Of a stretch of 64,000 nucleotides of DNA, positions 33,738-34,362 are shown piece after piece; positions within the stretch are counted from its first letter, which is position 1, and the number at the start of each line of letters is the position of its first letter. The notes beneath the pieces are model-generated. The model was given only the letters and a program-made list of their open reading frames with translations. It was not told where the DNA came from and searched no databases. Source of the DNA: Pavona decussata (Eukaryota); the NCBI GenBank assembly GCA_977016875.1, contig CDRNST010000090.1:124001-188000 (forward strand), written 5' to 3'. The translations under genes were made by a program, and so were the position numbers.

Positions 33738-34362
33738 TGAGATAAGCAAGACTGTTGCACTTGAAAGACAGCCGCAATTCTCAATATCAGTTGAACAGAT
33801 AAAGTGAGGATAAAATTGCCGAGAGGAAGGAGACTGCTGCCCTTGCAAGTCAGCCCCATTCAACCCAGTAAAATTTGTAACAAAGCATATACTTAATATA
33901 AAATAATATCAACAATACTGACCTAAGGTAGAGATGCATGAGACTGCTGCCCTTGCGAGACAGTCCCTACATCAAGTAATCAAACAAGAGTTAAGGATTT
34001 ACGAGCCAACAATTAACGAGATAAGTGAGACTGCTGCCCTTGCGAGACAGCCTCACTCAAGCAAGTCAAATGCTTTAGGAATACAAAAATGGTGAAATGA
34101 AAAAGGAAAGGGGGGGGGGGGGTGGGCTAATGCCCTTGGTAAACGGCCCTAAGCCTAAACCTACTATTAAACTATGGTTGTACTGAAATAGATAAAATGC
34201 GGCTGTAAGTTGAACGCAACTGCTGCCCTTGCAAGACAATTCCGCTCAAATTCCTGCATACATGTAACCAAATTACAGGAATAAAAATTAATTAACCAAA
34301 ACTATAAGTAATGCTGTGGTGGTGAATAAGACTGCTGCCCTTGCAAGTCAGCCTCCACCGCC
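33738..34362 (-). repeat. Array of seven 24-nt repeats with unique spacers, directly 3' of the YR stop
   Basis: Core GACTGCTGCCCTTGCRAGWCAGCC (+ strand) at 33750, 33832, 33942, 34029, 34125 (degenerate), 34218 and 34330; period 82-112 nt. Confidence 0.9.

Follow-up and report, generated by a model that had tools for sequence, protein, structure and literature searches.

A covarying RNA hairpin array downstream of the tyrosine recombinase gene in a cnidarian clade of Ngaro retrotransposons

The host element and its neighbours

The window analysed here is a 64,000-nt stretch of the Pavona decussata genome (contig CDRNST010000090.1, positions 124,001 to 188,000). On its minus strand, positions 33248-45873 hold a copy of a Ngaro-type tyrosine recombinase (YR) retrotransposon that is collinear with other genomic copies at 95-99% identity. 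A tblastn search with the proteins of an uninterrupted copy recovers the order GDSL, Gag, reverse transcriptase (RT) and YR on the minus strand. The window copy is degraded and dead, having a broken YR frame, a gag gene interrupted by an insertion, and a single terminal repeat B (33248-33526, minus strand) without A2, in the place where uninterrupted copies carry B1-A2-B2. The 5′ end of the element is formed by terminal repeat A1 (45611-45873, minus strand), placed by comparison with other copies.

The YR gene (34377-35302, minus strand) is broken near a run of 18 G residues (34804-34821, + strand); the run reads as poly-Pro in the sense frame and coincides with the frame break. The YR reading frame ends ...GRWKSNAFLKYIRVSTVST, followed by the stop codon TGA (34374-34376, minus strand). 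A homology search with YR returns 885 homologues at E ≤ 1e-5, several of which carry PF00589, and cnidarian sequences predominate among the listed homologues that have a source name, led by Oculina patagonica (86% identity) and followed by Montipora, Nematostella and Dendronephthya. In addition, YR gives weak matches to Cre over the catalytic C-terminus, and the GRW...Y..R C-terminus is present. The RT ORF matches RVT_1. Gag is found in two parts on the minus strand, an N-terminal part at 43165-44136 located by tblastn and a C-terminal part at 36807-37253 located by tblastn and motif comparison, the latter containing Cys/His motifs. The nested insertion that splits gag is 6.1 kb long (37255-43403) and has a Tc1/mariner-type transposase ORF on the + strand (37792-38745; DDE_3 and HTH_32).

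The uninterrupted copy L026 (6.9 kb) provides the intact organization, with ORFs for a GDSL/SGNH hydrolase, a 406-aa Gag-like protein, an RT (RVT_1) and a 305-aa YR, and with split direct repeats B2 (672-963), A2 (1005-1258), B1 (1243-1534) and A1 (7351-7604). A Pfam search of the four element ORFs found only GDSL/SGNH and RVT_1, and no methyltransferase domain. The lack of a methyltransferase domain separates Ngaro from DIRS and PAT elements. Ngaro elements are defined by split direct repeats in the order A1 ... B1-A2-B2, the internal repeats lying downstream of YR (PMC4157794). The host element is therefore a Ngaro element by this definition, as it combines RT and YR with A1 ... B1-A2-B2 (in L026) and has no methyltransferase. 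An SGNH ORF has been reported in some Ngaro elements (PMC7192593, PMC9210276), and in amphibian Ngaro elements the SGNH hydrolase ORF follows YR (PMC9210276). The Lipase_GDSL_2 ORF of the present element is located at the 5′ end, upstream of gag, and not after YR.

Two further features lie upstream of the region of interest. Between the GDSL/SGNH ORF and gag is a hairpin array (44206-44594, minus strand) different from the one described below. It comprises 6-8 GAGGCUUYGUUCCUC units, in each of which a stem of 4 bp carries a loop of 7 nt, and a YGWCAGCU motif is interspersed with them. This 5′ array is conserved, with seven units in Oculina and two in Nematostella; outside the window it occurs at L027:2605-2986, L029:5502 and 5626, and L030:~780-3400, and in the non-autonomous elements of family 3 it has grown into a long internal tandem repeat with ~61-nt units. 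Over 6 nt, its GWCAGC sequence (44400-44560) is the complement of GCUGWC, which forms the 5′ strand of the core in the 3′ hairpins (33750-34353), possibly by chance. Beyond the 5′ end of the element lies Element 2 (46953-50002, minus strand), a more distant YR retrotransposon that abuts it and whose YR and RT are 40% and 43-60% identical, respectively, to those of the window family (F1). The Gag Cys/His tail of Element 2 is similar to that of F1. A 21-nt inverted repeat with 95% complementarity pairs 45863-45883 with 46520-46540.

Layout, fold and covariation of the 3′ array

The array is on the sense (minus) strand of the element, within 33736-34367, and extends from 8 nt past the YR stop to ~210 nt short of terminal repeat B. 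A search with ACTGCTGCCCTTGCRAGWCAG, allowing up to three mismatches, gives six matches on the + strand (33751, 33833, 33943, 34030, 34219 and 34331), whereas the expected number in dinucleotide shuffles of the window is 0. A repeat search recovers the same six core copies, with a start-to-start spacing of 82-189 nt that becomes 82-112 nt once a degenerate seventh copy is counted.

All six copies are predicted as minus-strand hairpins by RNAfold and are matched by R1, a covariance model that we built from 17 hairpins (alignment A2). They are H1 (34316-34367, core 34330-34353; 52.2 bits), H2 (34204-34255, core 34218-34241; 51.6 bits), H3 (34015-34066, core 34029-34052; 55.6 bits), H4 (33928-33979, core 33942-33965; 49.6 bits), H5 (33818-33869, core 33832-33855; 56.2 bits) and H6 (33736-33787, core 33750-33773; 45.4 bits). 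The base of the core stem is A-U/A-U in H2 and G-C/G-U in the other copies. The degenerate seventh copy, H2b (34125-34148, minus strand), retains 15 of 24 core bases, folds unlike the other copies, and has no R1 match. H2b adjoins a run of 13 C residues on the sense strand; on the opposite strand, this region (around 34110-34122) reads as a 13-G run followed by T and three more G.

The first-pass annotation had described seven copies of a 24-nt core, the first lying about 20 nt after the YR stop, separated by unrelated spacers of 58-88 nt, with an atypical copy at 33750. Six copies are clear, and the count of seven holds only if H2b is included. The remainder of this description agrees with our analysis. 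Specifically, the first lower stem begins ~8 nt and the first core ~20 nt after the TGA at 34376-34374; the core-to-core gaps are 58-88 nt; the spacers, once trimmed of hairpin sequence, have no similarity to one another (all z<2); and the apex of H6 is degenerate, with three core changes, while its lower stem is retained. TRF detected no tandem array in the array region. Residual flank similarity is shared by H3, H5 and H6 (repeat family D2).

RNAfold predicts a hairpin for each copy examined. Taken as a whole, the array has a folding energy of -179.7 kcal/mol on the sense strand (z=-3.06), a value reached by none of 20 shuffles, and H1-H5 form locally in both the MFE and the centroid structures. 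In contrast, the antisense strand folds at -149.6 kcal/mol (z=-0.43), with no excess over background. Furthermore, G-U/U-G combinations outnumber A-C/C-A combinations at paired positions by 86 to 25 (p=5e-9), in a test that is partly biased because the hits were gathered with a sense-strand model. The difference in folding between the strands and the excess of G-U therefore place the structure in the sense RNA.

Each copy had also been proposed to be extended by its own complementary flanks, and flank-swap folding confirms this. In chimeras that join the 5′ flank and core of one hairpin to the 3′ flank of another, cognate flanks give a mean of -16.7 kcal/mol and non-cognate flanks -12.4 kcal/mol (permutation p<5e-5), and a hairpin's own partner ranks first for 8 of 13 hairpins. 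Pairing is thus kept while the flanks differ, in accordance with the earlier argument that the copies are not products of simple slippage.

Comparison across copies and families, which the first-pass annotation had called for in the form of a covariance model, supports the paired structure. Among 17 hand-anchored hairpins, 79% of cells are paired, compared with 31-57% in slid controls. Among 57 distinct hairpins (alignment A3), the fraction is 83.7%, compared with 23-55% when the partners are slid, and both sides change in 15 of 17 pairs; A3 was fitted to the model, so these pair counts are inflated. The covariation score is 0.438, compared with at most 0.131 in controls, and 0 of 500 shuffles reach 0.438. 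Compensatory changes also occur within the core, including CUG/CAG to AUG/CAU in family 3, G-C to A-U in H5 of Oculina, and an apical G-C to A-U in Nematostella.

Two folds were considered for the core, and the lower helix is common to both. The comparative data favour the fold with an ARGG loop (structure B), with variable positions unpaired and paired positions showing compensatory changes. The apex in this fold would be 5′-CUG-N-YU-N-GC[ARGG]GC-AG-CAG-3′, with 7 bp, two single-nucleotide 5′ bulges and a purine/G-rich tetraloop, on top of a lower stem in which sequence is free and pairing is maintained. All variable core positions are bulge or loop bases in structure B, and a C-G pair closes the ARGG loop in almost every one of the 57 distinct hairpins. 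The alternative fold, in which CUY/GGG is capped by GCAA (structure A), was rejected: pairing at column 20 is limited to 4 of 16 hairpins, the GCAG of family 3 does not fit the GNRA pattern, and family 4 carries A at a position that needs a pair. Fold and covariation thus bear out the structured hairpins of the first-pass annotation, but not the GCAA cap that it had assigned to them.

Distribution of the hairpins among families and genomes

In the 602-Mb genome of P. decussata, BLAST finds a 781-nt region that includes the spacers in 15 genomic copies at 95-98% identity; the array alone is 94-98% identical across these copies, and the suggested comparison of copies shows the same spacers in 15 of 15. 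The spacers have no other match in the genome at BLAST sensitivity. Variable sites among the 15 inserted copies make up 7.7% of hairpin positions and 7.5% of spacer positions (p=0.93). Since hairpins and spacers vary equally once inserted, the conservation of hairpins across families reflects selection on replicating lineages and not a mutational cold spot.

The hairpin is found in at least four Ngaro families of this genome besides F1. A second family has the same core with different spacing, its RT DNA being ~66% identical, and YR identity to F1 falls to ~46-48% in family 3. R1 hits 143 of the 150 genomic candidates scored, further families among them. In families F1-F4 and L037 the module comes immediately after the YR gene, and the place of the array, past the YR stop and ahead of repeat B1, is fixed. 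Ten extra genomic loci were fetched, all of which carry multi-hairpin arrays, with YR homology immediately upstream in nine; the exception is an ORF-less 2.35-kb tandem unit. Across families and genomes, the number of hairpins per element ranges from 1 to 12, and their spacing also varies. On the other hand, the model search of the window found no R1-type hairpins in Element 2, whose YR is 40% identical, in agreement with the earlier view that the array is a separable module.

Defective relatives retain the hairpins. Five hairpins remain in family 3, from which gag and most of RT are missing; family 4 has lost RT and most of YR and has 8-12 hairpins, its array having grown by tandem duplication of a ~219-nt two-hairpin unit, spacers included. 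The family 4 derivatives L031, L032 and L035 keep only YR residues 1-28 and 252-305. The ORF-less 2.35-kb unit keeps three hairpins and is arranged as a head-to-tail array in L033 (G000:C169:1455000-1464999). This unit has only ~770 bp in common with family-3 elements, comprising the three hairpins and the terminal region, and may represent a minimal non-autonomous YR element of which recombination has produced multimers.

The hairpins are also present in other cnidarian genomes. In an Oculina patagonica element, R1 matches five hairpins, the first of them 16 nt beyond the YR stop, and a sixth copy was found by pattern search with four core mismatches. When the array of this element is compared with that of F1 (the YRs are 86% identical), alignment is confined to the hairpin cores, and the spacers are unalignable, as they are between families in general, where they are AT-rich filler. 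Terminal repeat B is ~90% identical between F1 and Oculina, right beside these unalignable spacers, indicating that B itself is strongly constrained. In further assemblies, five hairpins (L043) and two hairpins (L041) directly follow the YR gene. Weak matches 3′ of YR comprise two Nematostella hairpins at L029:9632-9803, one of which has a stem of ~22 bp, and one recognisable hairpin in L028. Dendronephthya (L040) and L042 have no R1 hit; the module is thus not universal among YR relatives.

When positions 33000-34800 were scanned against Rfam 15 at E ≤ 10, all hits were at chance level (E ≥ 3) and fell far short of the gathering scores. Full-text literature searches returned no description of such arrays in Ngaro elements, in line with the statement of the first-pass annotation for Ngaro/DIRS elements. 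Within the literature searched, this cis RNA element of a cnidarian Ngaro clade, which covariation supports, is previously undescribed. Contigs from two coral metatranscriptomes (90-99% identity) cover parts of the array and the YR-stop/H1-H2 junction, and none of them is on the unique flank left of 33247. These matches are compatible with transcription of the array, as contigs that could also derive from DNA carry-over.

Possible functions of the array

In our assessment, the array is best explained, with a probability of about 0.5, as a multivalent cis-acting RNA signal whose apex is bound by an element-encoded protein, Gag being the leading candidate and RT another. A multivalent RNA signal had been among the proposals of the first-pass annotation, and it is the best-supported reading in view of covariation, strand, conservation, and retention in derivatives. 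The hairpins fold independently in the sense RNA of the element 3′ UTR, and in the proposed mechanism each apex would be a putative binding site for a protein acting on the element RNA, with several copies giving higher avidity. The array would tag the transcript for packaging or bring it into a reverse-transcription complex, and defective relatives carrying it could be mobilised in trans. Arrays would grow by tandem duplication, after which the spacers would drift and the hairpins would be held by selection.

Non-autonomous derivatives without gag, RT or YR keep or multiply the hairpins, pointing to a role in cis. An element protein is favoured as the partner because defective relatives conserve or amplify the sites and because Gag ends in two invariant Cys/His motifs. 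Specifically, the C-terminus of Gag contains C-x8-C-x2-C-x3-H and C-x2-C-x3/4-H-x4-C motifs, CCCH/CCHC-like, with Cys/His columns invariant from corals to Nematostella, and these motifs make Gag the foremost candidate. The knuckles of retroviral nucleocapsid (NC) bind G-rich hairpin loops. Several observations weigh against parts of this reading. A Pfam search of Gag, even at E ≤ 10, matched its Cys/His motifs to no zinc-finger model and found no capsid domain, and a PDB profile search with the C-terminal part of Gag likewise gave neither kind of match. Element 2 lacks the hairpins although the C-terminus of its Gag is similar. Retroviral packaging signals normally lie in the 5′ leader, whereas the array is in the 3′ UTR. 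An RT entry site is expected at the 3′ end of the RNA, but the hairpins are at least ~210 nt upstream of the terminal repeats.

The array shares features with known signals of retroviruses and retrotransposons. HIV-1 SL2/SL3 and the gammaretroviral GACG hairpin pair are packaging signals bound by the zinc knuckles of Gag NC. Like such signals in retroviruses and LTR retrotransposons, the array consists of several short hairpins with exposed purine/G-rich tetraloops in genomic RNA, Gag has Cys/His motifs, and function is suggested by conservation of the apex rather than of the stem sequence. Unlike them, it is in the 3′ UTR, has 1-12 copies and two conserved single-nucleotide bulges, and belongs to a tyrosine-recombinase retrotransposon, and its binding is predicted. 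The 3′ stem-loops of stringent-type LINEs are common to LINEs and their partner SINEs and are recognised by the LINE RT, and non-autonomous elements must carry this hairpin to be mobilised in trans. The array resembles them as a cis 3′ UTR hairpin retained in deletion derivatives. However, LINE stem-loops are single and at the extreme 3′ end, while the array is upstream of ~0.8 kb of terminal repeats and its RT is of the LTR-retrotransposon type. Within a YR retrotransposon, a hairpin at the 3′ end of the DIRS-1 mRNA was proposed as a self-primer (Poulter and Goodwin, cited in PMC7192593). As far as it is described there, that hairpin is likewise in the 3′ part of the RNA with a suggested role in replication, but it is single and at the mRNA 3′ end, whereas the present array is multi-copy, internal and Ngaro-type, with a conserved apex. 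The same source states that the primer of YR-retrotransposon reverse transcription is unknown (PMC7192593).

The main rival to an element protein as the partner is a host factor that would bind the hairpins and act on export, stability, localisation or translation of the unspliced element RNA. The structural evidence fits this reading equally well. In addition, the array occupies a CTE-like position between the last ORF and the terminal repeats, it offers several copies of one conserved apex on stems of free sequence, it has been conserved in hosts that range from a sea anemone to stony corals, and the lack of hairpins in Element 2, with its similar Gag tail, fits a non-Gag partner. Two precedents are pertinent. 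As in the CTE of Mason-Pfizer monkey virus, a structured RNA with internally repeated motifs lies between the last ORF and the 3′ repeat, although the hairpins here are separate, and the CTE is one long stem with two internal loops. As in the cluster of five IREs in the transferrin-receptor 3′ UTR, a conserved loop and 5′ bulge are combined with variable lower stems and unrelated AU-rich spacers, although here the loop and bulge have other sequences and the array belongs to a transposon rather than to a host gene. Against a host factor, no Rfam family (CTE, IRE or other) matches at E ≤ 10, and the multiplication of hairpins in non-autonomous derivatives is more simply explained as competition for element proteins. 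We therefore consider a host partner unlikely, while granting it appreciable weight. Processing of the hairpins into small RNAs, or their use as decoys for the host silencing machinery, would account for tandem hairpins in a transposon transcript, and the Nematostella stem of ~22 bp could be read in this way. This is improbable, since the modelled stems have ~17 bp with bulges and the units are ~40-50 nt, short for Dicer or pre-miRNA-like substrates, and conservation is centred on the apex (loop and bulges) and not on a 21-23 nt arm. A pre-miRNA-like precursor, for which a stem of ~22 bp or more is expected, is disfavoured on the same grounds of stem length and conserved apex.

The remaining readings concern DNA or deny a function. 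The hairpins could be DNA-level sites for YR, either accessory (arm-type) or folded and attC-like, used in circularisation or integration. The element encodes a YR, the array adjoins the B1-A2-B2 junction region, the hairpins have extrahelical bases as attC sites do, and DIRS-1 is reported to replicate via single-stranded cDNA (PMC7192593). As in integrons with their attC sites, a YR system is combined with imperfect hairpins that recur and whose stem sequences are poorly conserved. However, attC folds in bottom-strand single-stranded DNA, and the asymmetry here, with G-U in excess of A-C (86 vs 25) and an antisense, first-strand cDNA-sense fold at background, favours the RNA-sense strand. Moreover, no cassettes lie between the hairpins, double-stranded sites would need no copy-specific compensatory flanks, and the number (1 to 12) and spacing of the sites vary freely. 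Such sites are thus decidedly improbable. Much the same low standing is given to the hairpins as folded single-stranded recognition sites for the RT/YR machinery of the element, attC-like or serving as a priming platform; were this true, non-autonomous relatives would multiply hairpins to capture that machinery. A functionless decayed tandem repeat whose core was homogenised by gene conversion would be in keeping with the ~219-nt duplications of family 4 and the residual flank similarity among H3, H5 and H6. This reading is largely refuted by cross-family covariation and is very improbable: the apex is conserved between families (RT DNA ~66% identical, spacers unalignable) and between genomes, the lower stems change by compensatory substitution, and inserted dead copies reveal no mutational cold spot. 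Finally, the first-pass annotation had raised, as a more speculative idea, a CRISPR-like guide array in which acquired spacers direct the RT/YR machinery. The resemblance is limited to a superficial repeat-spacer layout, in which the spacing is irregular (with or without the degenerate copy) and the repeat flanks differ. All 15 copies of the family carry the same spacers, for which BLAST finds no second match in the 602-Mb genome; the spacers are rich in A+T, cannot be aligned from one family to another and range from 58 to 88 nt in length here, and array expansion duplicates whole units with their spacers. The first-pass annotation had itself named identical spacers lacking external matches as the outcome that would refute a guide role but leave a structural one standing. 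The guide-array idea is therefore rejected, and we give it practically no credence.

A multivalent signal read by an element protein, at the probability given above, bears on a poorly known process, as the primer, the packaging signal and the cis requirements of YR-retrotransposon replication are all undefined. The hairpin motif is a concrete candidate for a cis-acting signal in this process and a handle for binding and probing work. It is also a candidate new RNA family for Rfam, and gives a simple marker for recognising members of this Ngaro clade, and their non-autonomous relatives, when coral genomes are annotated.
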